Notes under the pieces: generated by a model
What the model saw: the letters and a program-made list of their open reading frames with translations, nothing else
Told to the model about the DNA's origin: nothing
The model's database searches: none
Translations under genes and position numbers: made by a program
Part shown: positions 21,549 through 63,872 of the stretch, piece after piece
How positions within the stretch are numbered: position 1 is the first letter of the stretch
How the letters are laid out: each line of letters opens with the position of its first letter
Assembly (NCBI GenBank): GCA_004431415.1
Contig: QPMI01000117.1
Span: 1 to 64,000, forward strand
Length of the DNA stretch: 64,000 bases
DNA from: Cyanophora paradoxa CCMP329
Lineage: Eukaryota > Plantae > Glaucophyta
Direction of reading: 5' to 3'

Positions 21549-21747
21549 AAAGAAGTGCGCGTGGGGCAGCGGAACCGAGTTGCGGCGGCGCACCCGTACC
21601 CCGGCTCGGCAGCTTGGCAGAGCTTGCCCGAGCTCAGCGGCGCAGCGCAGGCGCTTAGAACGTCGCGTAATCGAATACTCATGCCCGTTAGCTAAATCCG
21701 ACGGCCAGCAGGCTGCAGAGTGCGCGCTGGAGCGAGCCCGGAGCGAG
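21549..21747. promoter_or_regulatory. Putative bidirectional promoter between divergent DnaJ and F-box genes (copy 2 at 25170-25358)
   Basis: Only ~200 bp separates the two divergent ATGs (21548 minus, 21748 plus), and the spacer is conserved in the duplicate. Confidence 0.55.
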
Positions 21748-32827: not shown

Positions 32828-35800
32828 CTATTTGCCCAGCATCGCCGCAAGCTTGCACGGGAGGCAGATGGAGGAGCATGGCGGCGAGGCGGGGCCGGGG
32901 ACACCTGCCGCGTTGACTGGCTGCACCGTGAACTCGTTCATCTGGCCCGTCGGCAGGTCGGTGAGCTGGTAGGAAGTCTGCGAGGAAGTGAAGTCAGCGA
33001 TGAACCCCGAATATTACTTATCTGAAGTACATGTGCAGAGCTAAAGTATTAAAGCACTACATGCAACCCTCGCATGCACACCTGGTTTCCGGGGACCCTG
33101 GCGACCGGCAGGCCGTTTTGGAGCACCATGTACTCGGCGGGGGGGCCGTTCACCGGCGGGTCCCACGTCAGAGTGCCCGTCGTGCTCGACAGAATGCCCT
33201 GGTACACGTGCACGCGCCGACGAGAGTTAGAATTCGGATTTAATCGACGCCGATCGCGAGTGCGCATGCCGGCACGCACCTGGTCAACGTTGGTGAGTTG
33301 AACGTTCGAGGGCGCGGCCGGGTTGGTCGAGCGCTGCGGGGCGGCCTTCTGGCCCTCCGTCGGGTCCGGCACAACGACCGGCGCCGAGCCAGCGGCGGGC
33401 GCGGGTCCGCTGGCGGTGACGGGTACGACGGAGACGACGGGGCTTGAGCCCGCCGGAAGGCTCCCGATTTCGTACTCAGTGGAGGTCGGCGGGAGCGTCG
33501 CGACCGTCGCGCCGTTGACAACGACGTTGTACCCCTGGAGGCGTCCGTTGCCGAAGGCCTTGCCCGTGGGACGGTTCCACTTCAGCGTGGCGCTGCTAGC
33601 GGAGCTGGGCGCAGCGGTGAGCTGCACCGCCGAGCTCGGGTCCGACGTCGACGTCGACGGAGCGCTGGCCGCCAGGGGAAACGAGGCAGTCCCCGAGGTC
33701 CCAGAGGGACCCATGGGCACGACCTGGAACGGGAGGGATCGCGTAAACATCGAGTAAATATAAACATTGATTTTAGTGCGACGTTAGCATCGGTAATTAA
33801 TAAATGCTTGCCTGGTACTTGGCGGAGGCGCCTGGAGAGGCGGCGGGGACGAGGACGGCAGTCTGGGATCCGGGAACCACGGAAATGACCTGCGAAAATT
33901 AAAGAACTCGTGCTCAGCATCGTGGATATATATATAATCCATTCATGACCATGATCAATCAATGCAACCGCACCTTGCCGTTCGCCATGACGGCGTACGT
34001 AGTGGCGGGTCCGGATGCAGGGTGGCTCCACGAGAGCGAGCTGCCACCAGTACCCCCGCGGCCGCCAGCTTGCGTGAGGCGCAAGTTGGAGGGGGCGTTC
34101 TCGTCGGGGGCCGGGCCAGCCACAACGCCCGGGAAGGAAACAGTGTGGCTAATATCGGCGAGAGTTGCGGCCGAAGGGGCGGCGTACAGAGCCGCGCCGC
34201 TGACGCGGGCCAAATCGGAGCCCGCGGGGGCGCGGGCGGGCGAGGTCGCGCGGCCGTACGAATCCGTGCGCGGGCTTGTCGGCGAGGCCGACAGCCCGTC
34301 CGAGCCGGACGCTGCGCCGCCATACCCGGCGCCGCTCAGAGCCGCAGCACCGACGCCGGCGTACGGGCCCAGCCCGAAGCCGGATCCGGAGCTGCCACTG
34401 GTGACCGGATTCGAGGCCGGCCCCACGGCGCCGTTCGACGCGACCGGCACAACCTGGTAGACGCTGCCCGGCTCGCCGCCCTTCGGCGAGACGTCGAACG
34501 AGGTCTGGCTCGCCGGGACGCTGCCGAGGACCTTGCCGTCGCCGATCACGGCGTAGCTCGCGGGACTGCCAACACGGGGACGACTCCACGAGAGGCGGCC
34601 CGACGAGCCGAAGAGACCCGGCGAGCTCGAGAGCTGCAGGTTCGACGGCGCCATGTCCGCGGGGCTCGCGGGGCCCGCGCCGGAGCCAGCTGGGTACGAG
34701 GCGAGCGGCACGCTGTTGCTGGCGGGGCCCGCGGGGCTGCCCGACGACGACAGGGGCACCACCGAGAAGTACGAATTGGCCGCGGCGCTCGCGCTGAGGC
34801 CCTTGGGGACGAACGTGTTGACACCCGACGGCGAGGCCTTGGCGGTGGCGACCTGGCGGCCGTCCTGCAGGACGCCGAAGCTGCCGCGCGAGTTCGCGTC
34901 AGCGCCCCGCGGCACCGCGAAATACGCGCGAATCGCGCATCACGCACCTCGGGACGCTGCCCAGGGTCGCAGGAGTGGTCCACGCCAGCAGCGCGCTCGG
35001 GCTGGCGCCCGAGCCCGCCGGCGTCGAGGTCAGCGCGATGCCGGAGCTCGGGTCGCTCGGGAGCGAGGCCGCGAGCGGCGACGAGGTCGGGCCCGCGACG
35101 CCGTTGCTGTCAAACGGCACCACCTGCAGGGCCGAGGCGCCGCCGTTGGTCGGCAGGCCCGAGACCGGGACGGAGGTCTGGTTGCCGGGGACCGACGCCA
35201 CGGGCTTGCCGTCCTTGAGGACGGTGTACGAGGCGGGCGAGCCCGAGGCCGGGCGCTTCCACGAGAGGGTGGCGGAGCCGGGGCCGCTGCCGTTGAAGCT
35301 GCTGAGCGCGAGGCTCGAGGGGCGAGCGGGCTGGGGGCGGGGGCGTCCACGCCAGAGCCGGCGATGCCCGCGCCGGGACCCGACGAGGGGCCGTACGGTC
35401 CGGCACCAGCGCCACTGTACTCCGGCCCGCCAGCGCCGCTGTAGGCGGGCGCAGGGCCCGAGCCGCTGGTGGCAGTGTTCGAGGCCGGCCCCACGGCGCC
35501 GTTCGACGCGACCGGCACAACCTGGTAGACGCTGCCCGGCTCGCCGCCCTTCGGCGAGACGTCGAACGAGGTCTGGCTCGCCGGGACGCTGCCGAGGACC
35601 TTGCCGTCGCCGATCACGGCGTAGCTCGCGGGGCGTCCCGCCCGAGGTGGGCTCCACGAGAGGCGGCCCGACGAGCCGAAGAGGCCCGGCGAGCTCGTGA
35701 GCTGCAGGTTCGACGGCGCCATGTCCGCGGGGCTCGCGGGGCCCGCGCCGGAGCCAGCTGGGTACGAGGCGAGCGGCACGCTGTTGCTGGCGGGGCCCGC

Positions 35801-38800
35801 GGGGCTGCCCGACGACGACAGGGGCACCACCGAGAAGTACGAGTTGGCCGCGGCGCTCGCGCTGAGGCCCTTGGGGACGAACGTGTTGACGCCCGACGGC
35901 GAGGCCTTGGCGGTGGCGACCTGGCGGCCGTCCTGCAGGACGCCGAAGCTGCCGCGCGAGTTCGCGTCAGCGCCCCGCGGCACCGCGAAAACCGTGCGAG
36001 TCGCGCATCGCGCATCGCGCACCTCGGGACGCTGCCCAGGGTCGCAGGAGTGGTCCACGCCAGCAGCGCGCTCGGGCTGGCGCCGGAGCCCCCCGGCGTC
36101 GAGGTCAGCGCGATGCCGGAGCTCGGGTCGCTCGGGAGCGAGGCCGCGAGCGGCGACGAGGCCGGGCCCGCGACGCCGTTGCTGTCGAACGGCACCACCT
36201 GCAGGGCCGAGGCGCCGCCGTTGGTCGGCAGGCCCGAGACCGGGACGGAGGTCTGGTTGCCGGGGACCGACGCCACGGGCTTGCCGTCCTTGAAGACGGC
36301 GTACGAGGCGGGCGAGCCCGAGGCCGGGCGCTTCCACGAGAGGGTGGCGGAGCCGGGGCCGCTGCCGTTGAAGGTGCTAAGCGCGAGGCTCGAGGGGGCG
36401 AGCGGGCTGGGGGCGGGGGCGTCCACGCCAGAGCCGGCGATGCCTGCTCCCGGGCTGGACGCGCTCGACGGCGTGAAGCCGGTGCCAAAGCTGCCCGATC
36501 CGGAGCCCGCGGGGGCGCGGGCCGGCGAGGTCGCGCGGCCGTACGAATCCGTGCGCAGGCTAGCCGGCGAGGCCGACAGCCCGTCCGAGCCTGACGCTGC
36601 ACCGCCATACCCGGCGCCGCTCAGAGCCGCAGCACCGACACCGGCGTACGGGCCCAGCCCGAAGCCAGATCCGGAGCTGCCACTGGTGACCGGATTCGAG
36701 GCCGGCCCCACGGCGCCGTTCGACGCGACCGGCACAACCTGGTAGACGCTGCCCGGCTCTCCGCCCTTCGGCGAGACGTCGAACGAGATCTGGCTCGCCG
36801 GGACGCTGCCGAGGACCTTGCCGTCGCCGACCACGGCGTAGCTCGCGGGGCGTCCCGCCCGAGGCGGGCTCCACGAGAGGCGGCCCGACGAGCCGAAGAG
36901 GCCCGGCGAGCTCGTGAGCTGCAGGTTTGACGGCGCCATGTCCGTGGGACTCGCGGGGCCCGCGCCGGAGCCGGCCGGGTACGAGGCGAGCGGCACGCTG
37001 TTGCTGGCGGGGCCCGCGGGGCTGCCCGACGACGACAGGGGCACCACCGAGAAGTACGAGTTGGCCGCGGCGCTCGCGCTGAGGCCCTTGGGGACGAACG
37101 TGTTGACACCCGACGGCGAGGCCTTGGCGGTGGCGACCTGGCGGCCGTCCTGCAGGACGCCGAAGCTGCCGCGCGAGTTCGCGTCAGCGCCCCGCGGCAC
37201 CGCGAAAAGCCGAGATAAAGCGCGAATCGCGCATCGCGCACCTCGGGACGCTGCCCAGGGTCGCAGGAGTGGTCCACGCCAGCAGCGCGCTCGGGCTGGC
37301 GCCCGAGCCCGCCGGCGTCGATGTCAGCGCGATGCCGGAGCTCGGGTCGCTCGGGAGCGAGGCCGCGAGCGGCGACGAGGCCGGGCCCGCGACGCCGTTG
37401 CTGTCGAACGGCACCACCTGCAGGGCCGAGGCGCCGCCGTTGGTCGGCAGGCCCGAGACCGGGACGGAGGTCTGGTTGCCGGGGACCGACGCCACGGGCT
37501 TGCCGTCCTTGAGGACGGTGTACGAGGCGGGCGAGCCCGAGGCCGGGCGCTTCCACGAGAGGGTGGCGGAGCCGGGGCCGCTGCCGTTGAAGCTGCTGAG
37601 CGCGAGGCTCGAGGGGGCGAGCGGGCTGGGGGCGGGGGCGTCCACGCCAGAGCCGGCGATGCCCGCGCCAGAACCCGACGAGGGGCCGTACGGTCCGGCA
37701 CCAGCGCCACTGTACTCCGGCCCGCCAGCGCCGCTGTAGGCGGGCGCAGGGCCCGAGCCGCTGGTGGCAGTGTTCGAGGCCGGCCCCACGGCGCCGTTCG
37801 ACGCGACCGGCACAACCTGGTAGACGCTGCCCGGCTCGCCGCCCTTCGGCGAGACGTCGAACGAGGTCTGGCTCGCCGGGACGCTGCCGAGGACCTTGCC
37901 GTCGCCGATCACGGCGTAGCTCGCGGGGCGTCCCGCCCGAGGCGGGCTCCACGAGAGGCGGCCCGACGAGCCGAAGAGGCCCGGCGAGCTCGTGAGCTGC
38001 AGGTTTGACGGCGCCATGTCCGCGGGGCTCGCGGGGCCCGCGCCGGAGCCGGCCGGGTACGAGGCGAGCGGCACGCTGTTGCTGGCGGGGCCCGCGGGGC
38101 TGCCCGACGACGACAGGGGCACCACCGAGAAGTACGAGTTGGCCGCGGCGCTCGCGCTGAGGCCCTTGGGGACGAACGTGTTGACACCCGACGGCGAGGC
38201 CTTGGCGGTCGCGACCTGGCGGCCGTCCTGCAGGACGCCGAAGCTGCCGCGCGAGTTCGCGTCAGCGCCCCGCGGCACCGCGAAAATCCGAGATAAAGCG
38301 CGAATCGCGCATCGCGCACCTCGGGACGCTGCCCAGGGTCGCAGGAGTGGTCCACGCCAGCAGCGCGCTCGGGCTGGCGCCGGAGCCCGCCGGCGTCGAG
38401 GTCAGCGCGATGCCGGAGCTCGGGTCGCTCGGGAGCGAGGCCGCGAGCGGCGACGAGGCCGGGCCCGCGACGCCGTTGCTGTCGAACGGCACCACCTGCA
38501 GGGCCGAGGCGCCGCCGTTGGTCGGCAGGCCCGAGACCGGGACGGAGGTCTGGTTGCCGGGGACCGACGCCACGGGCTTGCCGTCCTTGAGGACGGTGTA
38601 CGAGGCGGGCGAGCCCGAGGCCGGGCGCTTCCACGAGAGGGTGGCGGAGCCGGGGCCGCTGCCGTTGAAGGTGCTGAGCGCGAGGCTCGAGGGGGCGAGC
38701 GGGCTGGGGGCGGGGGCGTCCACGCCAGAGCCGGCGATGCCTGCTCCCGGGCTGGACGCGCTCGACGGCGTGAAGCCGGTGCCAAAGCTGCCCGATCCGG

Positions 38801-44800: not shown

Positions 44801-47800
44801 CGGCGTAGCTCGCGGGGCGTCCCGCCCGAGGCGGGCTCCACGAGAGGCGGCCCGACGAGCCGAAGAGGCCTGGCGAGCTCGAGAGCTGCAGGTTCGACGG
44901 CGCCATGTCCGCGGGGCTCGCGGGGCCCGCGCCGGAGCCGGCCGGGTACGAGGCGAGCGGCACGCTGTTGCTGGCGGGGCCCGCGGGGCTGCCCGACGAC
45001 GACAGGGGCACCACCGAGAAGTACGAGTTGGCCGCGGCGCTCGCGCTGAGGCCCTTGGGGACGAACGTGTTGACGCCCGACGGCGAGGCCTTGGCGGTCG
45101 CGACCTGGCGGCCGTCCTGCAGGACGCCGAAGCTGCCGCGCGAGTTCGCGTCAGCGCCCCGCGGCACCGCGAAAATCCGAGATAAAGCGCGAATCGCGCA
45201 TCGCGCACCTCGGGACGCTGCCCAGGGTCGCAGGAGTGGTCCACGCCAGCAGCGCGCTCGGGCTGGCGCCCGAGCCCGCCGGCGTCGATGTCAGCGCGAT
45301 GCCGGAGCTCGGGTCGCTCGGGAGCGAGGCCGCGAGCGGCGACGAGGCCGGGCCCGCGACGCCGTTGCTGTCAAACGGCACCACCTGCAGGGCCGAGGCG
45401 CCGCCGTTGGTCGGCAGGCCCGAGACCGGGACGGAGGTCTGGTTGCCGGGGACCGACGCCACGGGCTTGCCGTCCTTGAGGACGGTGTACGAGGCGGGCG
45501 AGCCCGAGGCCGGGCGCTTCCACGAGAGGGTGGCGGAGCCGGGGCCGCTGCCGTTGAAGGTGCTAAGCGCGAGGCTCGAGGGGGCGAGCGGGCTGGGGGC
45601 GGGGGCGTCCACGCCAGAGCCGGCGATGCCCGCGCCGGGACCCGACGAGGGGCCGTACGGTCCGGCACCAGCGCCACTGTACTCCGGCCCGCCAGCGCCG
45701 CTGTAGGCGGGCGCAGGGCCCGAGCCGCTGGTGGCAGTGTTCGAGGCCGGCCCCACGGCGCCGTTCGACGCGACCGGCACAACCTGGTAGACGCTGCCCG
45801 GCTCGCCGCCCTTCGGCGAGACGTCGAACGAGGTCTGGCTCGCCGGGACGCTGCCAAGGACCTTGCCATCGCCGATCACGGCGTAGCTCGCGGGGCGTCC
45901 CGCCCGAGGCGGGCTCCACGAGAGGCGGCCCGACGAGCCGAAGAGTCCCGGCGAGCTCGAGAGCTGCAGGTTCGACGGCGCCATGTCCGCGGGGCTCGCG
46001 GGGCCCGCGCCGGAGCCGGCCGGGTACGAGGCGAGCGGCACGCTGTTGCTGGCGGGGCCCGCGGGGCTGCCCGACGACGACAGGGGCACCACCGAGAAGT
46101 ACGAGTTGGCCGCGGCGCTCGCGCTGAGGCCCTTGGGGACGAACGTGTTGACGCCCGACGGCGAGGCCTTGGCGGTGGCGACCTGGCGGCCGTCCTGCAG
46201 GACGCCGAAGCTGCCGCGCGAATTCGCGTCAGCGCCCCGCGGCACCGCGAAAATCCGAGATAAAGCGCGAATCGCGCATCGCGCACCTCGGGACGCTGCC
46301 CAGGGACGCAGGAGTGGTCCACGCCAGCAGCGCGCTCGGGCTGGCGCCGGAGCCCGCCGGCGTCGAGGTCAGCGCGATGCCGGAGCTCGGGTCGCTCGGG
46401 AGCGAGGCCGCGAGCGGCGACGAGGCCGGGCCCGCGACGCCGTTGCTGTCGAACGGCACCACCTGCAGGGCCGAGGCGCCGCCGTTGGTCGGCAGGCCCG
46501 AGACCGGGAAGGAGGTCTGGTTGCCGGGGACCGACGCCACGGGCTTGCCGTCCTTGAGGACGGCGTACGAGGCGGGCGAGCCCGAGGCCGGGCGCTTCCA
46601 CGAGAGGGTGGCGGAGCCGGGGCCGCTGCCGTTGAAGGTGCTAAGCGCGAGGCTCGAGGGGGCGAGCGGGCTGGGGGCGGGGGCGTCCACGCCAGAGCCG
46701 GCGATGCCCGCTCCCGGGCTGGACGCGCTCGACGGCGTGAAGCCGGTGCCAAAGCTGTCCGATCCGGAGCCCGCGGGGGCACGGGCCGGCGAGGTCGCGC
46801 GGCCGTACGAATCCGTGCGCGGGCTTGTCGGCGAGGCCGACAGCCCGTCCGAGCCGGACGCTGTGCCGCCATACCCGGCGCCGCTCAGAGCCGCAGCACC
46901 GACGCCAGCGTACGGGCCCAGCCCGAAGCCGGATCCGGAGCTGCCACTGGTGACCGGATTCGAGGCCGGCCCCACGGCGCCGTTCGACGCGACCGGCACA
47001 ACCTGGTAGACGCTGCCCGGCTCTCCGCCCTTCGGCGAGACGTCGAACGAGGTCTGGCTCGCCGGGACGCTGCCGAGGACCTTGCCGTCGCCGATCACAG
47101 CGTAGCTCGCGGGGCGTCCCGCCCGAGGCGGGCTCCACGAGAGGCGGCCCGACGAGCTGAAGAGGCCCGGCGAGCTCGAGAGCTGCAGGTTCGACGGCGC
47201 CATGTCCGCGGGGCTCGCGGGGCCCGCGCCGGAGCCGGCCGGGTACGAGGCGAGCGGCACGCTGTTGCTGGCGGGGCCCGCGGGGCTGCCCGACGACGAC
47301 AGGGGCACCACCGAGAAGTACGAGTTGGCCGCGGCGCTCGCGCTGAGGCCCTTGGGGACGAACGTGTTGACGCCCGACGGCGAGGCCTTGGCGGTCGCGA
47401 CCTGGCGGCCGTCCTGCAGGACGCCGAAGCTGCCGCGCGAATTCGCGTCAGCGCCCCGCGGCACCGCGAAAATCCGAGATAAAGCGCGAATCGCGCATCG
47501 CGCACCTCGGGACGCTGCCCAGGGTCGCAGGAGTGGTCCACGCCAGCAGCGCGCTCGGGCTGGCGCCGGAGCCCGCCGGCGTCGAGGTCAGCGCGATGCC
47601 GGAGCTCGGGTCGCTCGGGAGCGAGGCCGCGAGCGGCGACGAGGCCGGGCCCGCGACGCCATTGCTGTCGAACGGCACCACCTGCAGGGCCGAGGCGCCG
47701 CCGTTGGTCGGCAGGCCCGAGACCGGGACGGAGGTCTGGTTGCCGGGGACCGACGCCACGGGCTTGCCGTCCTTGAGGACGGTGTACGAGGCGGGCGAGC

Positions 47801-50800
47801 CCGAGGCCGGGCGCTTCCACGAGAGGGTGGCGGAGCCGGGGCCGCTGCCGTTGAAGCTGCTGAGCGCGAGGCTCGAGGGGGCGAGCGGGCTGGGGGCGGG
47901 GGCGTCCACGCCAGAGCCGGCGATGCCCGCGCCAGAACCCGACGAGGGGCCGTACGGTCCGGCACCAGCGCCACTGTACTCCGGCCCGCCAGCGCCGCTG
48001 TAGGCGGGCGCAGGGCCCGAGCCGCTGGTGGCAGTGTTCGAGGCCGGCCCCACGGCGCCGTTCGACGCGACCGGCACAACCTGGTAGACGCTGCCCGGCT
48101 CGCCGCCCTTCGGCGAGACGTCGAACGAGGTCTGGCTCGCCGGGACGCTGCCGAGGACCTTGCCGTCGCCGATCACAGCGTAGCTCGCGGGGCGTCCCGC
48201 CCGAGGCGGGCTCCACGAGAGGCGGCCCGACGAGCTGAAGAGGCCCGGCGAGCTCGAGAGCTGCAGGTTCGACGGCGCCATGTCCGCGGGGCTCGCGGGG
48301 CCCGCGCCGGAGCCGGCCGGGTACGAGGCGAGCGGCACGCTGTTGCTGGCGGGGCCCGCGGGGCTGCCCGACGACGACAGGGGCACCACCGAGAAGTACG
48401 AGTTGGCCGCGGCGCTCGCGCTGAGGCCCTTGGGGACGAACGTGTTGACGCCCGACGACGAGGCCTTGGCGGTCGCGACCTGGCGGCCGTCCTGCAAGAC
48501 GCCGAAGCTGTCGCGCGAATTCGCGTCAGCGCCCCGCGGCACCGCGAAAAGCCGAGATAAAGCGCGAATCGCGCATCGCGCACCTCGGGACGCTGCCCAG
48601 GGTCGCAGGAGTGGTCCACGCCAGCAGCGCGCTCGGGCTGGCGCCCGAGCCCGCCGGCGTCGATGTCAGCGCGATGCCGGAGCTCGGGTCGCTCGGGAGC
48701 GAGGCCGCGAGCGGCGACGAGGCCGGGCCCGCGACGCCGTTGCTGTCAAACGGCACCACCTGCAGGGCCGAGGCGCCGCCGTTGGTCGGCAGGCCCGAGA
48801 CCGGGACGGAGGTCTGGTTGCCGGGGACCGACGCCACGGGCTTGCCGTCCTTGAGGACGGTGTACGAGGCGGGCGAGCCCGAGGCCGGGCGCTTCCACGA
48901 GAGGGTGGCGGAGCCGGGGCCGCTGCCGTTGAAGGTGCTAAGCGCGAGGCTCGAGGGGGCGAGCGGGCTGGGGGCGGGGGCGTCCACGCCAGAGCCGGCG
49001 ATGCCCGCGCCGGGACCCGACGAGGGGCCGTAGGGGATCGACGTCGCAACCAGAGAATCGCCTTCTGCTCCGGTGTACGGACCCGGAGCTGGGCCCGTCC
49101 CACTGCAAACCGGATTGGAGGATGGGCCCAGCGATCCAAAGCTGTCGACTGGGATGACCTGGAAGACGCTGCCGGTCTCGCCGCCCTTCAGGTTTTCCTG
49201 TACTTGGAAGGACGATTGAATTGCGGGGACGGTGCCGAGGAACGTGCCGTCGCCCACGACAGCGTAGCCTGCAGGGCTTCCGGCATTTGGCCGGTTCCAT
49301 GACAGGGTGCCTGAAGAGTCGAAGAGGCCCGGCGAGCTTGCAAGCTGGAGTCCCGTCGGCATCATTTCGGCAAAGCTTGCAGGTCCTGCGCCGGATCCAA
49401 CCGGATACGAAGCAACTGGAAGACTGTTGCTGCTCTGGCCCATTGGGGAACCATTTAGAGAGAATGCTTGTACGGAGAAGCGCGAAGTTGCAGCCACACT
49501 TGGAGACAGACTCTTTACTGTGAACGAGTTGACGCCTGTCAGTGAGGGTGGCACTGTCGCAATCTTTTGTCCATTTTGCAGTACCACAAAGCTGCTTCAT
49601 CGCGTCAAACTTGGTCTCACGGGAGATTTGAGAACCAATTCAAATTCCCTCACCTCGCAAGGGCACCAACATCCGCGCTGAGGGCAGAGGTGGGAGTGGT
49701 CCACGCCAGCAGCGCGCTCGGGCTGGCGCCGGAGCCCGCCGGCGTCGAGGTCAGCGCGATGCCGGATCCGGAGCTCGGGTCGCGATCGCTCGGGAGCGAG
49801 ACCGCGAGCGGCGAGGAGGCGGGGCCCGCAACGCCGTTGCTGTCGAACGGCACCACCTGCAGGGCCGAGGCGCCGCCGTTGGTCGGCAGGCCCGAGACCG
49901 GGACGGAGGTCTGGTTGCCCGGGACCGACGCGACGGGCTTGCCGTCCTTGAGGACGGTGTACGAGGTGGGCGAGCCCAAGGCCGGGCGCTTCCACGAGAG
50001 GGTGGCGGAGCCGGGGCCGCTGCCGTTGAAGGTGCTGAGCGCGAGGCTGGACGGGGCGAGCGGGCTGGGGGCGGGGGCGTCCACGCCAGAGCCGGCGATG
50101 CCCGCGCCGGGACCCGCGTGATCAGAAAGAACCGATGGACCCGAGGCCCCACGCGATTCCGGCAGGAACGCGTTACCAAAGACCGGGCTAGATGGTGGGC
50201 CCGCCGAGCCATTTGATGCGATGGGAAGGACCTGGTAAGCGCTGCTGGGCGCAAACGTCGAATTCGGCGTCTCAAACCACGTCTGGCTCGCCGGGACGGT
50301 GCCGAGGACCTTGCCGTCGCCAATCACGGCGTAGCTCGCGGGGCGTCCCGCCCGAGGCGGGCTCCACGAGAGGCGGCCTGACATCGATAAGCCAAAGAGG
50401 CCCGGAGAGCTCGTGAGCTGCAGGTTCGACGGCGCCATGTCCGCGGGGCTCGCGGGGCCCGCGCCGGAGCCGGCCGGGTACGAGGCGAGCGGCACGCTGT
50501 TGCTGGCGGGGCCCGCGGGGCTGCCCGACGACGACAGGGGCACCACCGAGAAGTACGAGTTGGCCGCGGCGCTCGCGCTGAGGCCCTTGGGGACGAACGT
50601 GTTGACGCCCGACGGCGAGGCCTTGGCGGTCGCGACCTGGCGGCCGTCCTGCAGGACGCCGAAGCTGCCGCGCGAATTCGCGTCAGCGCCCCGCGGCACC
50701 GCGAAAATCCGAGATAAAGCGCGAATCGCGCATCGCGCACCTCGGGACGCTGCCCAGGGTCGCAGGAGTGGTCCACGCCAGCAGCGCGCTCGGGCTGGCG

Positions 50801-53800: not shown

Positions 53801-56800
53801 GACGGGCGCGACGGAGAAGAGCGACTCGGCGACGGTGCTGCTCGGCAGGTTCTTCGCGGTGAACGAGTTGATGCCGGAGGAAGACGGCTTGACGACGCCG
53901 ATCTGGCGCCCATCTTGAAACACGGCATATCTTTCGAATCATCGGCGTCAGAATTCGCATAATGTGATATATGTATATCTGAACATAATCGGGTGGGGGA
54001 AATAAACCGATCGCTCACCCCGGAGGACCGCCAGCGCCAGGCTGGAGATCGCCTGCAGGTGTTGTCCAAGAAATCAGGGCGCTCGGGTTGCTCGGATTGC
54101 CGATGGGCGTCGACGTGAGGGCGATGCCGGTCGCCGGGTCGCGGGGCAGGATGGCCGCCAGTGGCGACGAAGGCGGGCCGGCGTAGCCCCTCTCGTCGAA
54201 CGGAACGACCTGGAGCGTTGAAGGGCTGCCGTTGGTCGGCAGGTCCGAGACCGCGATCGAGGTCTGACTGCCGGGCACGGAGCCGGCGGGAGTCCCGTTC
54301 TTGAGGATACTGTAGCTGTGCGGGGTGCCGTTCTGCGGTGGGCGCCAGGAGAGGGTCGCGGAGCCGGGACCGCTCCCGTTAGCGTTGAAGCTGCTGACCG
54401 CGAGGCTGGAAGGGGCGAGCGGGCTGGGGGCGGGGGCGTCCACGCCAGATCCGGCGATGCCAGCGCCAGGGCCGATGAGGGGCCGGTAGGGAGCAGGAAC
54501 TCCCATTCCGGGATCGCCCGACACGGGCAGCGAAGCAGGCCCGACGTTGCCGAAACGATCGATGGGCAGGACCTGGTAGACCTTGCCGCCGCGAGGCACA
54601 TCGGCCGAGGTCGCGCTGCCGGAGACGTTGCCAACCACCTGACCGTCGCTGAAAATCGCGTAATTCCCCGGGCTCCCACTGGCGGGGCTGTTCCAAGAAA
54701 GCTTCCCAGATCTAGACGAGCCGAACAGGCCGAAGCCGGAATCGCTGGTCAGCTGCAGGCCGGTCGGCGCCATCATCGGCTGGCTGGCATTGGGGCCCGC
54801 GGAGGAGCCAACTGGGTACCAAGATATGGGCGCCTTGCTGCTCGGGGCGCCGATGACCTCGCCGCTGGGCGAGATGGGCGCCACCGAGAACAGGGTCTCT
54901 TGGCCGGGGATGAGGCCGGGATTCCGGACGACAAAAGTGTTCACGTCACTGCGCGTCGAGTTCGGGGGCTTGACCGTGCCGATCTGCTGGCCGTCTCTGA
55001 AAATCGCGTAGCCGCCAATGCCGCCAGCTGTGCCAGTCGCGGGCGTGTTCCAGGCAAGGTGGCCGTTGGGGTTCGGGCCGGGGCCCATCGGCTGGGCTGT
55101 GAGTGTAATGCCATTGGGATCGCTAGAGAGCGCCGCGGAAAGCGTGTGGGACGGCGGTCCGGCGACGCCCTTGTCGTCGAAGGGAACGAGCTGCAGCTTG
55201 GTGCACTTCCCGTCGGTCGGCAGCCCGGGAAGCGGGTACGTTGTTCGGTTCCCTGGAACGCTGTCGACGGGCTTGCCGTCGCGGAGGACGGTGTAGCCCG
55301 CCGGCTGACCCGCCAACGGCGGCGTCCACGTCAGTCCACGTACGCTCGAGCCTTTCTCGTCAACCGCGGAAGCCGAGTTTGTGATGGCGAGGTTGGAAGG
55401 GGCGAGCGGGCTGGAGGCGGGCGCCTCGAGCTCGGAGCCCACGATCCCCGCGCCCGGCCCGCTCGGGTCGTAGGGGGTCCGCCACGCGCCGGCCCCGGCA
55501 CCCTTGCCACCGCCCGATCCGACGCCCTCGCCGCCGCCAGTACCGGCGCCCCCGCCTGAACCCGCGTACGGCTCGTAGGGCGCGGTTGCTGAACTCTTGG
55601 GGAAGATGCTGGGTATGCGTAGGGTGCCCTTAACGATCGCGGCGGTGATCCCAACGACGAGCAGGCCCGCGAAGCCGATGCCGAAGGCGAGCGGCAGGAT
55701 GTGCGACATCTGCCGACGAGAGTCATTTTTTAGATTGGCGGTTCAGAGATTGGGTCGCGATGGTCAAGAATATATACCTGGCTGTTGTTGCCGCCGTTTT
55801 CTTGCTGAGGAACTTCAGAAAGGCCTGCGGCAAACGCCGGCTGGCTTGAAGAGAAGAAGTTCGGAACAATTTGGCCGAGAGTAAACTGCGCAAGAGAAAA
55901 ATAAGATATTCGAAGCGCGAAAGGTTGCCTCTCAATCTCGTCCTCTCATGAAAATTTATACTTGCCGTGGTCTGCGCGCAAAAAGTGAATAAGCGAGAGA
56001 TAATTGGAAATTAAACCCCGAGGCTGTGCGCGCTTGCGAACTAAAAAGCGCAGCTTACCAGGTGCGTGCAGAACCCCCGAGCATACCAAACGCCCTGCGA
56101 ACGGTGCGTGAGTTGAAGGTGGCTCTCCGAGGATGCATGCGCTGAACCGCACGCGTACATCTTTTTGGAACAGGTCCCCCGCATCCGTCGCTTTCGGGTC
56201 GGGATTGTTTGCATCGCCGAGCTGGAGAGTTCGAATTCGTTATAAAATAGCGGTCGTCGAGCGTCAAGCTCACAGTGTACTATTGGCTAGAAATTTTACG
56301 CGTACCCACATGTTGATCTTCGGTTTAAGCTTCGTCTGACACGACTCCCAGCTTAGAGAGGTCTCGTTCCAGAAGATGAGGTACTGCTGCTCCGTCGGCA
56401 TCGTTTTTTGCGCTTCGGGGTAAGGGATTTCGATGATGATCGGCTTGTCGTCCGAGAGGCCTGTGATACGGAATCCGAGCACCTGCGCGCAGACCGCAGT
56501 CGTTCAGATCGCCTGTGAATTGGTCGGTATTGAATTGAAGGCGAACGCACCGAAATGTCAACGAAGCCACCCGTGATCTTGACATTACCCGTGGCCTCAC
56601 CCCCCTCGGGCCCCCTCCATACGGGCGGCCACGGCGATCTCTCCATGTTGAGGACCGACACGCCGAATCCTGCAGTCCGTGCCTTCAAATTCGGTACGAG
56701 TCCCTCGCTTTATACAATTAGAATCAAGGGCAGCCGCGCCCGCGCGCACCGTCGGTGCCGTTCTTTGGAACGAAGTCGCGAACCTCGAACGGGAGCTTCA

Positions 56801-59800
56801 CCAGCGCCGGGAACACGCCTTCGCCGCCTTTGGTTGTGTCGATGTTGTAATACACCCTGCAGATTGCAATTGGACTCAGCTTCCAATTCGTCGGCAGGCA
56901 CTTCAACAGATTGCGGAGCTTTCGCACCTTACATCAGTGAAGCAGACTGCTCGCACAAAGCACACGTGTTAAGATAAGATAATAACAATGGAATTAACTG
57001 CAAAAACTCAATTTCTTCACGCACTCTTTCCGGCGGTCTGTGACGATCAGGTTTTCGAGTGCAAATACAGTCGGGTCGAGTCAGCAAAGAAAATACAGGC
57101 AAGAGCGAAACGAAATGGGAGATGAAATAAAGCACCACAGCCGCTGCATCGGCAGCTGCATTACGCAAGCCGTCCGTGCAGCCTCGACAACTGCAGGAGG
57201 GAGAAAAGAATAAGATCCCCGCACGATCGTACGCGTGAACGTCAACGTTTGCGTGGAGGACGGTCGCACTTCGCGAGACGGCCTTGGGGCTGCTTGATAA
57301 GGGTGTTCAACAGGTTCGCGAGCGGATTGCTCGAGCCCGATCCCTCGGTTTGCCCAGTGAGACCTGTGCCAGCGGTGCCGACCCAGTCCGGACTGGCTAT
57401 CGCAGCTGACAATTCTTTGGTGGTCTATGAAATTCGCATAAGTAAACAGAACAAATGACGCAACACGGAGTGTAAGCACGAATGGCGCACTTGGTCCAAG
57501 TAGACGCTGAGGTCGAGGTCCACGAAATCGCACGGGTCTAATGCTGGCTTGCATCTCGACAGCTTCAGCATCAGCGTCGAGTTGAGGAACCTGTTGCGTT
57601 CATGCTCGGTCAATTGCAGATCTAGAACTCGCTCGATTGATATTTACACATATAATATATTATAACATTAATATTGAAAATGAAACGAATTATAATTTCT
57701 CTTCAAGGACGCACGAGCTGGAGGCATCCGCAAGAGCCACAATGGCTTTAAAAGTACTCTCCAGCTCCGGGTACGACTCCGTAAGGTTGCCGGCGTTTCG
57801 AGCAATGTTAGCGCGCTTTTCCGCGACGCTTGCGGCTAAGCAAGCGTCGTCAATTATTTGTTCCAAGTAAGGCGGTTTCTCTACACCTGAACGTCGTGAA
57901 GTCAGCAGCAATCATGATTTATATATAATCAACCAGATTAATATTCCTGTGGCTGGCGACCGTTCGCACCCTTGTCGCTCTTGATCTGGCCGGCTAAGGT
58001 AGAGACCACTTCGGCCTTCAACCCGATAAACTCCTTCTCCGTGATCGCCCCTGAATCGTAAAGCTGCTTGAGCTCTTCTGCGTAGCTGGTGTAGGTCGAG
58101 CTCAAGCTTTCGTTTCGCGGCGTATTCACAGTGATGTTCAGGACAACATCTGTGTGCAAATACAGAATCAGCCACAAAACGTCCGCCAAAAAGCTCTAAT
58201 CTCGATTCAAATTAAGTTTGCACCAGAGCAACCACAGGCGCTGCTAGAGCAGATGGTCGCTGTGAGCACAACCGCGCCAGCGGGGACAGCGCCGGCGGAG
58301 AGGCTCATGATACTGCTCTGCTCGGGCTTTGCAAGAACCCTATCTTTAAGCTGCAGGGTGCAAGGTCAGGGGAAAGGGTGGAAAGATTCATTCAATGGCC
58401 TTAATATTTAAATTTGCGTTCTCAAAGCGCGCGGACCTTGAGGGAGTAGAAGAGCGGCAGTGCCTTTTCCAGTTGGAAGGGCGGCCTCCAGTTGGAGCAG
58501 GTGACTGTGTACTTCGTCGCAAACAGTGTGCCCTCTGTCGGCGAAATCGTGCAGGCCCCGGACTCCGGAGCAGCGTTGCAGACCGGTACCGCCGGATCAA
58601 CGGGTTCCGTGGGCTTCGTGGGGTTCGTGGGGTTCGTGGGGTTCGTGGGATTCGTGGGGTTCGTGGGGCTCGAAGGGTCCGTGGGGCTCGAAGGGTCCGT
58701 GGGATTTGTGGGGTCCGTGGGATTCGTGGGATTTGTGGGATTTGTGGGATTTGTGGGATTTGTGGGGTCCGTGGGATTCGTGGGATTGGTGGGATCCGTG
58801 GGATCCGTGGGATCCGTGGGATTCGTGGGATTCGTGGGATTCGTGGGCGTTGTGGGTGGGACGGGGGCCTGAGAAGGAGACGTGCTTGTAGAGGGGTTCG
58901 TGGGGCCCGTGGTCGTTGTGGGCGGTACGGGGGTCGCGATCGGCCTCGGAGTCGGCCTCGGAGTGGGCGTCGCCGCAACCACGCCGCCGCAGACTTGCGC
59001 TAAGAAGTCTCTGCTGCTCTCGCGATATCCTCCTGCGCGAGGATTTTTTGAAATCAGGTTTGCGAGTCTTTCGAACATTATGCGCTGCCTCCAATTAAAC
59101 GCTCTGACCGAAGCGGTTCATGGCGCGGAGGAAGACGCGATACACGCGGTTTATCAAGCAGCTGGTCTTGAAAGGAGGGTCTAAAGAGTTGAGGTCGAAC
59201 GACGTCGTCGTGTTTGCGATTCCTTTAACCACGTGAGTCACTTGTTCTTGGTCGGCGATGTCGGTAAGATCGTTGTACTCCGGCGGATTAGTTCCGGGCT
59301 TTTGCACAGGAGCAGGAGAAGCCTTGAGCTACATAAGGGCGTCGTGTCAATTCAGGAGCAGAACAGGGGCATGCCTAGTAGAGTGAAACCCTCTAGATAT
59401 TTGTGTAATGAAGTCAGAGCTCACTCGGATCACGAGAATGTTGTAGCCGTACGGTGTGAGACGCTCAGTGTCTTTGGTGCCGTCCGGATTCGTCCACTTG
59501 ACCGTGTAATCGGTGCCAACGGGTTCTGGTTTTGGGGCTGTGAGGGTCTGTCAGTCAATTACACGCTTGCAAACTGTTTGATTGCTTGTACCGTGCCACC
59601 TCTGGAAGTCGAACCATGTTTTGGCGCGCTCCTCGGTAAAGACATAAGCGAATTGGATGCTGAATCCATCTTTGTATATGAGACTAGCCGCGTGCCGCTT
59701 AGTCCAGTCAAACCAGAGAGTGAGCATATCGTTGGCGGTGTTGTTGTATCCAATTGCAGCTTTCGCTGGATCGAGTTTGATTGTATTTATGAGGTTAGGT

Positions 59801-62800
59801 AGGATCTGGGCTGGGTCGTGGGGGTCCAAGCCCAGTCCAACCTGCGCTTTCGCATTGTGGAATCCCTGCTGGCCTTCGTCGTGGACGAGCCTGAGCGAGT
59901 CTCGTGATCAACATGTGCATGCAATTATTGTGATTGACAGGTGTCGCAGCAAAGGGTTATATTACGCATGCATACCCAACGAAGCAGCGTTCTGAGGACG
60001 TTTCAGGAGAAACAGAACGAAAGAAAAAACAACTGCAGGATCAAGAAGCTTTGACTGCGTACCGAACAGGAGGCCTTTAGCTCCGATGGAAGCGATGGTG
60101 CCCTCACCGGCGGCCGCCCCCACGTTGTTTTCGTTGTTTGGTTGCCTGTATATCTTGTTCTTGGTAGCTGGGGACGATCGCGAATGGCGTAAGAAATGTG
60201 GCGTGTGCGCAGCCTAAAGGTATCGACAACGAAAAGTCGAATCCACACCGTGCATCTCTGCATTCATAAGTGAGAATCGTCATGATCAGCGAGATCGAGT
60301 AATTAATCAGGAAAATCAATTATAAAAAATACCCCTTGTTCGCGGCCTTGTCGGCTTTTGGTGACTTGAGCCCCAATCCACATAATTTGTCGCAAAATTA
60401 TTGCCTTCGAGGGTATAGGAGGAGTCGACCGTTGTCGATCCGACGTCATGCGATTGTCTGCAGCAGGTCAGCGCAACATTCGGTAGAACACATTAATATT
60501 TACGAAAAACAAACCGTGATGGGCCCCAGTGTATATATCTGGGATCGCCGCGATCCAGGCCCTTTGGAATTTGCGCGGGGTCTTCAATGCCCGCCAAAGT
60601 GCCTGGTAATCGGCGCGGCAGGGTATCAGTCATGCAACTTCAGCGAACCCGGCATCATGCTTTAAGCTGTGTGCCTGTTGTGCTCTGCTGACACTTACAC
60701 AATATGGGACGCTCCCTTGGTGAAAGACACTGCTTACATGGGTAATGGGTACATAAGGGGGCCATTTTTCACTAGTGCACTTAAGGGCGAGGCAGCGGGG
60801 CTAGGCCACGATGCGAGCGGGCCATCTAGGGCCCGCATCTAGGGCCACGATGCCAGAGGTTCCGCATGCCGCAGTGCGCATATATATGGGACGCGCACCC
60901 CTCTCGGCAGATTCCACCCTCGTCTCTATTGTCTCTGCAGCTGCCCTCTCGCGATCGCAGACACATGTTCGAATTCTGAGGGGTGAACACTTAAGGGCCT
61001 CTGGACATAGCCGATCCCCTCCCTCTTGCCGTACGCGTACGCGTACCCCGGGCCGATTAATCTTCTGCGGAATGAATCGAAGCTAGCATATAGCTATATA
61101 TACCTATAGGATACCACATGCCGGGCTCGCACCTTTCTGCTGGTCGATGTCGGGGTCGATTTGCCGCATGTAGTAGGAAACTGGAGGTGTCGGGTTTAGT
61201 TTTGTTTTTAGTAGAGCGGGGGAGGGGGGTGGAAGAGGGGGAAGGGGGGAAGGGGGCCGAAAGGGGGGGCCGGAAAGGAGGGGGGGGGAAAGGGGGGTGG
61301 GGGGGTGGGGGTGGGAATGGCCAGTCGCTTCTGAAGTTCTGTGGGAGGTCCCCACATATGCATATATCCTATGATATACGCGTATATATATACGTACCTG
61401 GGTTATATGAGGATCGATCTACATCATAGTCGGCTCTGTGCGCCGCGGCGAGACCAGCACACGTGAGTCGAAACGCTTAACATTCGTACGATGCAAGAGA
61501 GCGCGTCCGGGGCTCCTGTATAGCTAGAGCTGATCTTAATAAAATATGATTTCGATTAAAACAGCTCACATCACAGTGTAATCGATGTAGATCTCGAAGT
61601 TTTCACCGTCCTCGCGAATAAAGTACCTGGGCGCGCATGTAAGTCATTTGCATGCCGTTTTGTGTTTCCAGAATTAAAAATGTACGTGTGAGTGTGTGTC
61701 AAGCGGAGGGAAGCGTCATTCAACGGATCGAGGGGATCTAGGCTTGGGATGACATGGACCACTGTAATTCCTGAAGGCGGCAACAGAAAAGTCATCACGC
61801 GCTACAAGAATACCACGAATCATAAATTTACCGTCGTCCTCAACAAGAGTCTTGTTGATGCCGATATTCGAAAATTTTTTCCCGACCTTCGCATCAATGC
61901 CAGCTGCATTCACAAAAAGAAATCGATTCCCATGTGGGGTTTGAGAATCTCTCGAAGTAGTGCCCCAGCCTGCGATCGCGAGATGAATACGTGAGAAGAG
62001 CACCAGCTTCAGCAGAGCTGGGCCACATTGCTACGTATGAGGATTAGCAACCTGATTGGCGTTGGCAATCAGGCCCGAAAAATAAGGCCTGCTTTCGCGC
62101 TGCCCTGCATGCAGCAACCTAATTATAACCTAACCATACCTACAGCTGTAGCCTTGAAAGCAACTTTGCATCCAATGCCACATGCACTCATATTTATGCT
62201 TCCTAGCTAAAGTGGCCTCTTGATAAAAGAGATTAATTGCCTCACCTTCAATCGGAAATCCTTGAGTCTGACACAAATACGCGTGTCAGTTCCCATACTA
62301 CGGTAATGCACGGCCAGATATACGTCAAATAAGTTTGCGCACAATGAAATCCTTTTTATTTAAATAAATAGAAATCGTTTGTAATGATCAGTTGACGGAT
62401 GCAGCGAATGGACATGGTTAGAAATCAATTGAAGACGCACGCCACAGTAGGCCATTTGCCTATTGAACCCACGAGCGCAGGTCACAGAATTACTATAAGT
62501 ACACGATAAAATTCTCCTTGCTTAGGTAAATATATTGTAGCTGCACCTTCCGGTCCTGCAGCCTTTTCCCGTTTTCGAGCAAGTCCCGTCCTCTTGGGGA
62601 GGAGTCGCCTCAATGTAGTCATCGTACTCTGCGGCAAATGGAAATATGCAAAAGCGCAGGCATTGCGCAGCCATGGCCCTTTTCGTACCTGGCCACGTGT
62701 TCCACTGTGTGTCAGGCGAATAGAGTGAGTAATGCAGAAGGATCACAAAATTCAAGTGCATAAACTGCATTTCGCACTCCGTCCTTGTCAATATCGACGA

Positions 62801-63872
62801 AGAGTCCGTGGCCGTAAAAGCGTCGAAGGGTATGGCCAAGCGGAAAGCCGTCAGGGATCGGCCCGAAAGTTCCGAGGGCGCCTGTGTATGAGTCGATGGC
62901 GGTCAGGATGTGCCTCCCAACGACGAGGTAGTCCGTTGCATCGAAAGCGCGCTGCTGCACCCCATCGTAAAGCCTCCACGGGAGGGGGTGCGCGCCGCGC
63001 TCTGGCAAGGTGACGCCTGCGCGGTTTCATTAATATTCGCATTGCAATTGTGTAAAGCTCGCGGACCCATGTTGCCGCGAATCTCAAAAAGCGGCCTGTA
63101 CTCACTGCCGCGCACGTTGGTGCAGACTCTGCACGCAAGTGTCGTGGGCAAATTGCGCGCGCGCGCGTCCAAATCGGAGCAGATACGCATACTTCTCCAC
63201 AGTACCCCAAGCCTGATCCATTGCGAGTGGTCGATACTGCTTGTCCCAGGGAGCGTACAAGTCGCTGTTTGGGTTCGGCGATGGGAAAGGGTACGAGTAC
63301 TGGAGCTCTCTGCGGTCATTGTCACGCGTACGAAAACATCCGAATCAAAAAGTCGAACGAAGTCCGCAAAAAAATTGGCTACCCGTTCGAATGACCTAGT
63401 AGATATCGGAAATCGACATAAGCGTCGAATTTGCACGTAATTAAAAAAACCAAATCGAGCACCTAACCAGCGTGGATACTGGCGCACGCGCACAGGGGTC
63501 GACGTCAGCGCTTCGGCGTAAAGAGTGTTCGCATTTTCCTTCTAAAAAATGGTTACCATGCCACCTCCGGCCTCCTTTCCCTGAAGGGAGGAGGGAGGGA
63601 GATGAGACATGAAAGTTAGAATTCCATGGGACTCATATCTTGCTTACCGAATACCCCCCAGCTTTCGGAAGCAGCTTCCCGGATCCCAGCATGTACGTCT
63701 CTGTGTGCTTGCTGAGGCCCGTGAGCCGTTGGACCTCGTAAGGTGAGCGGAAACCAAGGTAATGATTGCGGCCGTTCTCGAGCTGCTCAATTCCGGTCAC
63801 GGCGGGTGTTAAACTTCCAACAGCGGCAGGCGAGAAGAGTTGATTCCACGATGGATCAAAGAGAGCAGTCAT
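32828..63872 (-). CDS. Giant single-pass REJ-GAIN/GPS receptor-like protein with ~60 FN3-like repeats C-terminal to the TM (estimated >8,000 aa; 5' end probably outside the window)
   Basis: I traced a phase-consistent exon chain from ~60.2 kb to the stop TAG at 32830-32828 (apart from three 1-nt gaps in the array). Order: FN3 (YTVKWTNP...YGYNILV...VYRVFLRAMNRFG, 59540-59115), PT repeats, REJ module, helical GAIN-A-like region, GAIN-B (DISVLGFRITGLSDDKPIIIEIP...FWNETSLSWESC...GFCTHL|TT|FTLG), TM (55700-55632), FN3 array. Exon-like segments continue from 60.2 to 63.9 kb, but their frames are less certain. Confidence 0.85.
33960..48600 (-). repeat. Homogenised coding tandem array of 12 full units plus a terminal partial unit; short 1078 bp (1002 exon + 76 intron) and long 1219 bp (1143 + 76); each unit encodes 3 FN3-like domains
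   Basis: Equivalent anchor positions are 48542, 47464, 46245, 45167, 43948, 42870, 41793, 40574, 39497, 38278, 37200, 35983 and 34915. The conserved phase-2 intron reads ccgag|GTGCGC...gctgac...cggcAG|cttcggc. Confidence 0.95.
48600..55410 (-). repeat. Diverged 5' units of the same FN3 super-repeat (about 6-7 units)
   Basis: Same three-domain C-A-B order and the same phase-2 intron position (~49650, 50740, 51840, 52910, 54017), but with many substitutions and unique linkers. Confidence 0.9.
55632..55700 (-). other. Single transmembrane helix of the giant protein
   Basis: ILPLAFGIGFAGLLVVGITAAIV is followed by K/R residues (KGTLRIPSIFPK). The Met at 55709 follows a splice acceptor and an in-frame upstream exon (55885-55778), so it is internal rather than a start. 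Confidence 0.85.
55860..56680 (-). other. GAIN subdomain B with GPS autoproteolysis motif
   Basis: Spliced: ...PIIIEIPYPEAQKTMPTEQQYLIFWNETSLSWESCQTKLKPKINMW|LGDANNPDPKATDAGDLFQKD|GVWYARGFCTHL|TT|FTLGQIVPN. This gives the W-x6-W-x2-C...C-x-H-L/T-x-F pattern about 40 aa before the TM. Confidence 0.82.
58120..58585 (-). other. REJ (receptor for egg jelly)-type module
   Basis: PESGACTISPTEGTLFATKYTVTCSNW...LPLFYSLK|LKDRVLAK...GAVVLTATICSSSACGCS|DVVLNITV matches the P-x-x-G-x-C-x-I-x-P-x-x-G...T-x-F/Y-x-x-x-C-x-x-W...PL-x-Y pattern I recall from polycystin-1-family REJ regions. Confidence 0.75.
58600..58980 (-). repeat. Coding 9-bp minisatellite encoding a (PTN/PTD)n Pro-Thr stalk
   Basis: gggattcgt/ggggttcgt/gggatccgt tandem units on the plus strand; the minus-strand translation is PTNPTNPTDP... 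Confidence 0.92.

Follow-up and report, generated by a model that had tools for sequence, protein, structure and literature searches.

The minus strand of a 64,000-nucleotide (nt) stretch of the Cyanophora paradoxa CCMP329 genome (contig QPMI01000117.1, positions 1 to 64,000; hereafter the window) encodes an array of about 59 FN3 domains, led by a membrane helix and, further upstream, by exons with a REJ-like module and a GPS-like motif. The explanation we favor, with modest confidence, is that these exons form one C. paradoxa gene whose product is a type-I membrane protein with 8,000 residues or more, with a REJ/GAIN-like part outside the cell, a single helix in the membrane and the FN3 domains in the cytosol. 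An earlier note on this DNA, made from its letters alone, had joined what look like separate open reading frames (ORFs) into a gene of this kind.

The FN3 array

The array occupies 23 exons on the minus strand, from an ATG at 55709 to a TAG at 32828-32830, with 21,174 coding nt or about 7,060 residues. We built its exon table from coordinates and set four of the introns by hand. All array introns have GT..AG borders except one at 33811-33724, which is GC..AG. The parts of the array are as follows.

55632 to 55700, minus strand: single membrane helix of 23 hydrophobic residues, followed by Lys and Arg (hydropathy)
34880 to 55709, minus strand: 18 exons that encode the helix, then a Gly/Ala-rich linker, then about 56 FN3-like domains (Pfam fn3, repeats, structure model and Foldseek)
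32828 to 34879, minus strand: five exons that complete the last repeat unit, followed by three distinct FN3 domains and then a short Cys-rich tail closed by the TAG (exon table; Pfam fn3, E 2e-8 on 33049-33750)
42763, 39591 and 35322 (approximate), minus strand: one-base deletions in C runs (alignment to sister units)

From 34.9 to 55.3 kb the sequence is made up of direct repeats 1078 or 1219 nt long. Each unit encodes three FN3-like domains and carries one phase-2 intron, about 76 nt long, inside the second domain. Most central exons alternate between 1002 nt (334 residues) and 1143 nt (381 residues), and between 34880 and 48507 the longer units are set apart by a 47-residue insert in the linker that joins the third domain to the first domain of the next unit. 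The units are 97-100% identical in the center of the array and 60-90% identical towards 49-55 kb. Where they have diverged, the coding sequence is kept and the intron sequence differs, as real exons would behave. Exons 12, 14 and 18 measure 1001 nt, each one base short of its sister units within a C run, and these deletions are probably assembly errors of the homopolymer kind made with long reads. The earlier description of some 7,000 residues in 20 sets of three FN3 domains, ending in a stop, is thus right in length, in domain count (about 59 FN3 strand-B tryptophan motifs) and in the TAG at the array's end, although as assembled the frame is broken three times.

The domains themselves are recognizable by sequence and by fold. 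Pfam fn3 (PF00041) matches six of the array ORFs with E values of 2e-13 to 5e-5, several of them above the 25-bit cut-off. We modeled the unit exon 47508-48506 on a 19-row alignment of window units and paralogs, and the model reached a predicted local distance difference test (pLDDT) score of 68.8. Its top 50 Foldseek matches were all tandem FN3 structures, with probability 1.0 and E values down to 8.5e-7, and they include RIM-binding protein, fibronectin, DCC, the integrin beta-4 tail and titin. Structure prediction thereby confirms the FN3 assignment made earlier, with the array domains predicted to adopt the seven-strand beta-sandwich fold. At the other end of the chain, the last five exons hold no membrane or hydrophobic segment. 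The tail at 32828-32900 (minus strand) has four cysteines; speculatively, and if the tail is cytosolic, lipidation there could anchor the far end of the chain to a membrane.

Using the ORF at 54015-55709 (minus strand) as a query against 1.84 billion representative proteins, we obtained 58 matches, of which the 13 strongest (P0001-P0012 and P0014) are EukProt models of C. paradoxa. Two Cyanophora models, P0062 and P0001, come from contig tig00000459, the same contig as the window. P0062 (g1071; 1,676 residues) begins with the ATG at 55709 and runs to about 49660, where it reads into an intron. P0001 (g1070; 4,803 residues) starts at an internal Met at 49365 and ends at about 33800 by reading into the GC..AG intron, thereby losing the last three FN3 domains and the Cys-rich tail. 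The public annotation has divided the array partway through a repeat unit and begun its first part at the helix; g1071 and g1070 are fragments of one array. An annotation that cuts within a unit and breaks off at a GC..AG intron cannot be relied on for its boundaries here. The public gene models of this locus and its paralogs are best treated as fragments.

The three next-best matches outside Cyanophora among those checked (P0013, P0015 and P0016) are NCBI/ENA records, and the one named among them is a bacterial FN3 protein from Quadrisphaera (about 30% identity, E 7e-20). No eukaryote other than Cyanophora appeared among the matches whose source was checked. The bacterial similarity may stem from a like composition, or this type of FN3 domain may have originated in bacteria.

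Upstream exons and a putative GAIN domain

The G+C content of the window is 70-76%, falling to about 52% at 56-64 kb because this part holds many short exons and AT-richer introns. The segments we recognized there are listed below.

59098 to 59550, minus strand: two open segments, called an N-terminal FN3 domain in the earlier note (open frames; no Pfam family)
58437 to 59117, minus strand: Pro/Thr-rich stalk exon and start of the REJ-like module (period-9 repeat; Pfam REJ)
58350-58224 and 58149-57970, minus strand: two exons continuing the REJ-like module and starting a helical region (phase-consistent GT..AG sites)
57886-57715, 57590-57491 and 57424-57270, minus strand: three helical-looking exons in the place of GAIN subdomain A (phase-consistent splice sites)
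56857 to 57269, minus strand: segment with several phase-consistent exon models and a T-rich hydrophobic stretch near 57147 (splice sites, hydropathy)
56856-56750, 56669-56551 and 56482-56306, minus strand: three beta-rich exons in the place of GAIN subdomain B (tblastn, alignment)
56059 to 56094, minus strand: 36-nt exon ending in the GPS His-Leu (splice sites; 75% identical to P0009)
55966 to 55971, minus strand: 6-nt exon for Thr-Thr, the putative nucleophile, with a GC donor (splice sites; paralogs read HL-TT-F)
55778 to 55885, minus strand: exon encoding the final GAIN strand plus a linker of 28 residues (splice sites; resembles paralog sequence after the GPS)

The stalk that the earlier note had read as Pro/Thr-rich is a 9-nt tandem repeat of 26.7 copies that encodes Pro, Thr and Asn. 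The REJ assignment also survived: Pfam REJ (PF02010) matches residues 180-226 of the same exon (E 6.6e-8; 32 bits against a cut-off of 25). The match spans profile positions 310-351, or 42 of 452, and so describes a single short REJ-like module. Two claims about the region further upstream were not confirmed, as the N-terminal FN3 domain placed at 59.1-59.55 kb gave no Pfam match and neither strand of 59.9-64 kb, where the gene had been started at 63872, matched any Pfam family.

Several features of the following exons point to a GAIN domain that ends in a GPS. The GPS-like motif has both tryptophans and His-Leu|Thr-x-Phe at the canonical spacing, and splice sites are in frame from this motif down to the helix exon, with upstream donors mostly of the same form as those of the array introns. 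The beta-rich exons contain both GPS tryptophans and the first retained cysteine, and a tblastn search with residues 1-78 of the paralog P0009 found window exons at 56646-56339 with 45-58% identity. The GAIN fold consists of six helices followed by a 13-strand sandwich. The order and size of the elements here (REJ-like, helical, beta-rich, GPS, helix) fit GAIN, the helical character of the exons at 57886-57270 being a reading of the sequence by eye. Given splicing from 55778 to 55709, about 40 residues lie between the putative cleavage site and the start of the membrane helix. Additionally, GAIN domains have two disulfides, C1-C3 and C2-C4 (PMC3321182), and in this gene and its paralogs C2 and C4 are kept while C1 and C3 are lost, which is a paired pattern.

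Searches by profile and by fold lend this assignment no support. With the window exons searched one by one, Pfam GPS and GAIN gave no match at E values up to 10 (nine pieces and P0009 residues 1-175), and searches of PDB sequences, with a single sequence and with a profile, gave none. A model of P0009 residues 1-135, built on a five-row alignment, was all-beta and of low confidence (pLDDT 44.6), and Foldseek returned no meaningful match for it, so that the model speaks neither for nor against the GAIN fold on which the earlier note had staked its claim. In a language-model search, ZU5/FIIND clusters ranked above the GPS cluster with scores of 0.80-0.87, all below 0.9 and a lead only; ZU5 and FIIND are cytosolic self-cleaving sandwiches. 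The GAIN/GPS claim keeps its HL|TTF motif and in-frame splicing, but has no Pfam match. Judging from the residue pattern and the order of the exons, we consider it likely that the upstream domain is GAIN.

A probable single gene across the helix exon

We next consider whether the upstream exons and the array belong together, for which the clearest guide is a set of Cyanophora paralogs. P0009, its twin P0060 (tig00021532) and P0063 (tig00020902) each run in one model through a beta-rich part, the GPS sequence HL-TT-F, a linker, the helix and an FN3 array. The helix exon of P0009/P0060 and of P0063 begins with Leu and has no Met; P0063 has a splice junction equivalent to 55778/55709, whereas P0009 appears to retain the homologous intron in frame. 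Because these paralogs read from GPS through helix to array without a Met at the helix, they support a fused gene, as the joining of separate ORFs in the earlier note had implied. At this locus, a phase-0 GT..AG intron of 68 nt separates the linker exon from the helix exon. The Thr-Thr of the 6-nt exon matches the HL-TT-F of the paralogs exactly, and we roughly estimate at 1 in 100 the chance that an AG-6 nt-GY site encoding Thr-Thr would occur in the 173-nt interval. With splice sites and paralogs as our evidence, we think it highly probable that the REJ/GPS exons and the helix with its FN3 array are one fused gene.

The strongest alternative follows the annotation: an upstream REJ/GPS gene would end at about 55730, and a second gene would start at the ATG at 55709, its hydrophobic segment serving as an N-terminal anchor. 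The helix exon does begin Met-Ser-His before its 23 hydrophobic residues, g1071 starts exactly there, and the models of two paralogs (P0003 and P0059) start at the same Met-Ser-His. When we looked for the upstream beta-rich exons in annotated proteins of 220-2149 residues, only P0009 itself carried them, with no GAIN-like exons in the rest. No RNA run was found to contain the stretch (three presumed RNA runs gave no match), and the fused paralog models are themselves predictions that all start inside the GAIN-like region. These observations speak against fusion. The annotation boundaries are unreliable here, however, and two paralogs without a Met at the helix are modeled as fused. Additionally, no GPS protein is known that lacks a following helix (PMC3321182), the 68 nt between the exons leave no room for a promoter outside the upstream gene, and the charges flanking the helix would predict a cytosolic array even for a stand-alone protein. 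Two separate genes thus seem unlikely.

Two other sequences bear on this junction or on the paralogs. Run X1 was considered as RNA support and discarded, since it proved to be DNA, colinear with the window. One of its contigs follows the helix exon and the four bases that precede the ATG (55710-55713), beyond which the two sequences part. This contig probably represents a paralog with the same acceptor site, and its divergence at that point is weakly consistent with an exon boundary there. P0061, a 36-residue ENA protein in the cluster of P0009, was rejected as a relative because it lies on an unrelated contig of 40% GC (L001), and its membership looks spurious.

The fused gene that we favor has relatives with quite different outer parts. 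P0012 (tig00000396_g24884) has about 3,200 residues of IPT/TIG repeats, then a helix of the same type, a Gly/Ala-rich linker and FN3 triplets. By sequence likeness, the helix and FN3 tail seem to be a module shared behind different outer parts. We define a Cyanophora helix-plus-FN3-triplet family by its helix, Gly/Ala-rich linker and three-domain FN3 units, all of which are present here. We conclude that this gene belongs to a Cyanophora-specific family in which a helix and FN3 tail stand behind differing outer parts.

Topology, relation to known proteins and possible role

A hydropathy scan of the three minus-strand frames over 24-64 kb found only the helix at 55632-55700 and a T-rich stretch near 57147. 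The same helix is present in P0003, P0059, P0009, P0063 and P0062. Acidic residues precede it and one to three Lys or Arg residues follow it in five family members (this gene, P0009, P0063, P0012 and P0007). The known GAIN domains all directly precede a first membrane helix that runs from outside to inside (PMC3321182). Because the GAIN-like domain precedes the first helix and positive residues follow that helix, the FN3 array probably lies on the cytosolic side, and the flanking charges would place it there even with a translation start at 55709. The same conclusion had been drawn earlier in part from sequons and cysteines, and these arguments turned out to be weak. Sequons number 26 in the array, where its composition predicts 29, and there are 3 cysteines in 4,803 residues; FN3 domains seldom carry cysteines on whichever side of the membrane. 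With the sequons near expectation and FN3 poor in cysteine anyway, neither count discriminates between topologies.

If the stretch near 57147 were exonic, the topology would change. Its best 19-residue window scores 2.04, and it translates as a 23-residue hydrophobic run within a 125-codon open frame (56932-57306, minus strand). Such an extra upstream segment would make the array of a single fused gene extracellular; alternatively, the helix could sit in a cortical vesicle membrane and the array, perhaps as plate material, on the lumenal side. The composition of the array (62% Ser, Gly, Ala and Pro) would also suit a secreted glycoprotein, near-identical tandem units of this kind are common in surface proteins, and the ZU5/FIIND-like clusters that ranked first in the language-model search are cytosolic. 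Moreover, no signal peptide or N-terminus was found for the type-I protein. These points run counter to the type-I protein with a cytosolic array. We argue, however, that the 57147 stretch is an intron, because it is pyrimidine-rich and flanked by splice signals, lying between donor-like and branch-plus-acceptor sites like the other introns of this gene. A membrane helix within a GAIN domain would make no structural sense, the GPS-type Trp, Cys and HL|T pattern and the sequons fit an outside location of the GAIN-like domain, and in five relatives the main helix is followed by positive charges. We therefore rate an extracellular or lumenal array as quite improbable. The claim of a single membrane helix accordingly stands in that one convincing helix exists at 24-64 kb, with the second hydrophobic stretch read as intron.

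Least plausible is a decaying or mis-assembled locus, either a pseudogene or a copy number made by the assembler. In its favor, and against an intact gene, the frame is interrupted by three one-base deletions between 42.8 and 35.3 kb; the units are 97-100% identical, and no RNA was found. Yet all three deletions fall in C runs, as is typical of long-read error, and apart from them the 21 kb are in frame and the splice sites intact. Diverged units keep their coding sequence while their introns diverge, and over 54.7-60.7 kb the window does not differ from DNA contigs of an independent run of 2012. We hold this explanation to be very doubtful.

The predicted single-pass protein shares parts with several known systems. 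No PLAT or channel domain matched on the scanned ORFs and no seven-transmembrane (7TM) region appeared in the hydropathy scan, as the earlier note had reported. Polycystin-1 (PKD1) and PKDREJ likewise have REJ and then GAIN/GPS directly before the first helix (PMC3321182), but polycystin-1 goes on to 11 helices, PLAT and a channel-like end with a channel partner, whereas this gene has one helix and neither a PLAT nor a channel region. Adhesion G protein-coupled receptors (GPCRs) have the GPS His-Leu|Thr near the membrane, and their cleaved fragments stay together (PMC3321182). They differ in the seven-helix body that follows GAIN, which is absent here, in the linker from strand to helix (5-6 residues, against about 28) and in having both GPS disulfides, one of which this gene lacks.

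For a single-pass REJ/GPS protein there is a precedent in sea urchin suREJ1, the sperm receptor for egg jelly, which has a REJ module and a GPS motif and then a single membrane helix. That protein has a short tail together with EGF and C-type lectin domains, whereas the present gene has an FN3 tail of about 7,000 residues and one short REJ-like module. To our knowledge, GAIN/GPS occurs only ahead of 7-helix or 11-helix signaling bodies, save in a few short-tailed REJ proteins.

The tail has partial counterparts of its own. Long intracellular FN3 chains are known mainly from animal muscle. Titin, twitchin and obscurin are very long cytosolic chains of FN3-type domains in super-repeats, and titin FN3 tandems were among the fold matches; unlike the protein predicted here, they are not membrane proteins, mix in Ig and kinase domains and belong to animal muscle. 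Integrin beta-4 is a type-I protein whose cytoplasmic tail links to the cytoskeleton through FN3 domains, and its FN3 pairs were also among the fold matches, but it has four such domains where this gene has about 59, and its outer part is unrelated. Usherin and other FN3-rich surface receptors are single-pass with tens of FN3 domains, which lie before the helix and outside the cell, whereas the array of this gene comes after the helix. Our search for published work on FN3, REJ or polycystin-like proteins in Cyanophora found none. The earlier view that the architecture is undescribed thus needs trimming on its single-pass REJ/GPS side, where suREJ1 came first, and holds for the FN3 tail: a GAIN-like outside, one helix and about 59 probably intracellular FN3 domains form a design not described before.

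In the one-gene, type-I arrangement that we favor, the N-terminal part, the Pro/Thr-rich stalk, the REJ-like module and a GAIN-like domain, first helical and then beta-rich and ending in the GPS motif, would lie outside the cell. This domain is predicted to cleave itself between Leu and Thr, and its pieces would stay together without a covalent bond. One helix would cross the membrane some 40 residues past the cleavage site, and the Gly/Ala-rich linker, the FN3 domains and the short Cys-rich end would lie inside. Most likely, the protein would act in surface adhesion or bear force, its FN3 chain forming a long extensible tether or scaffold in the cortex. With no 7TM or channel body available as its target, the cleaved GAIN would then work as a break-away link and not as an agonist switch.

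Cyanophora cells are wall-less flagellates, and immediately beneath their plasma membrane are flattened, overlapping vesicles with plates inside (PMC4593968). We tentatively propose, as a possibility that falls short of a preferred view, that glaucophytes evolved a receptor class of their own, in which interchangeable outer parts (REJ with a self-cleaving GAIN, or IPT/TIG arrays) and one helix are joined to titin-scale cytosolic FN3 chains that would tie the plasma membrane to the cortical vesicle system, with GAIN cleavage serving as a mechanical break-away link and not as a receptor switch. If this is true, GAIN cleavage can work without a receptor body, membrane-anchored giant elastic proteins extend beyond animals to an early-branching alga, and the family offers a molecular handle on the little-known glaucophyte cortex.

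Elsewhere in the window, the ORF at 21312-22649 (minus strand) contains a DnaJ domain (Pfam, E 1.4e-7) and apparently belongs to an unrelated neighboring gene.

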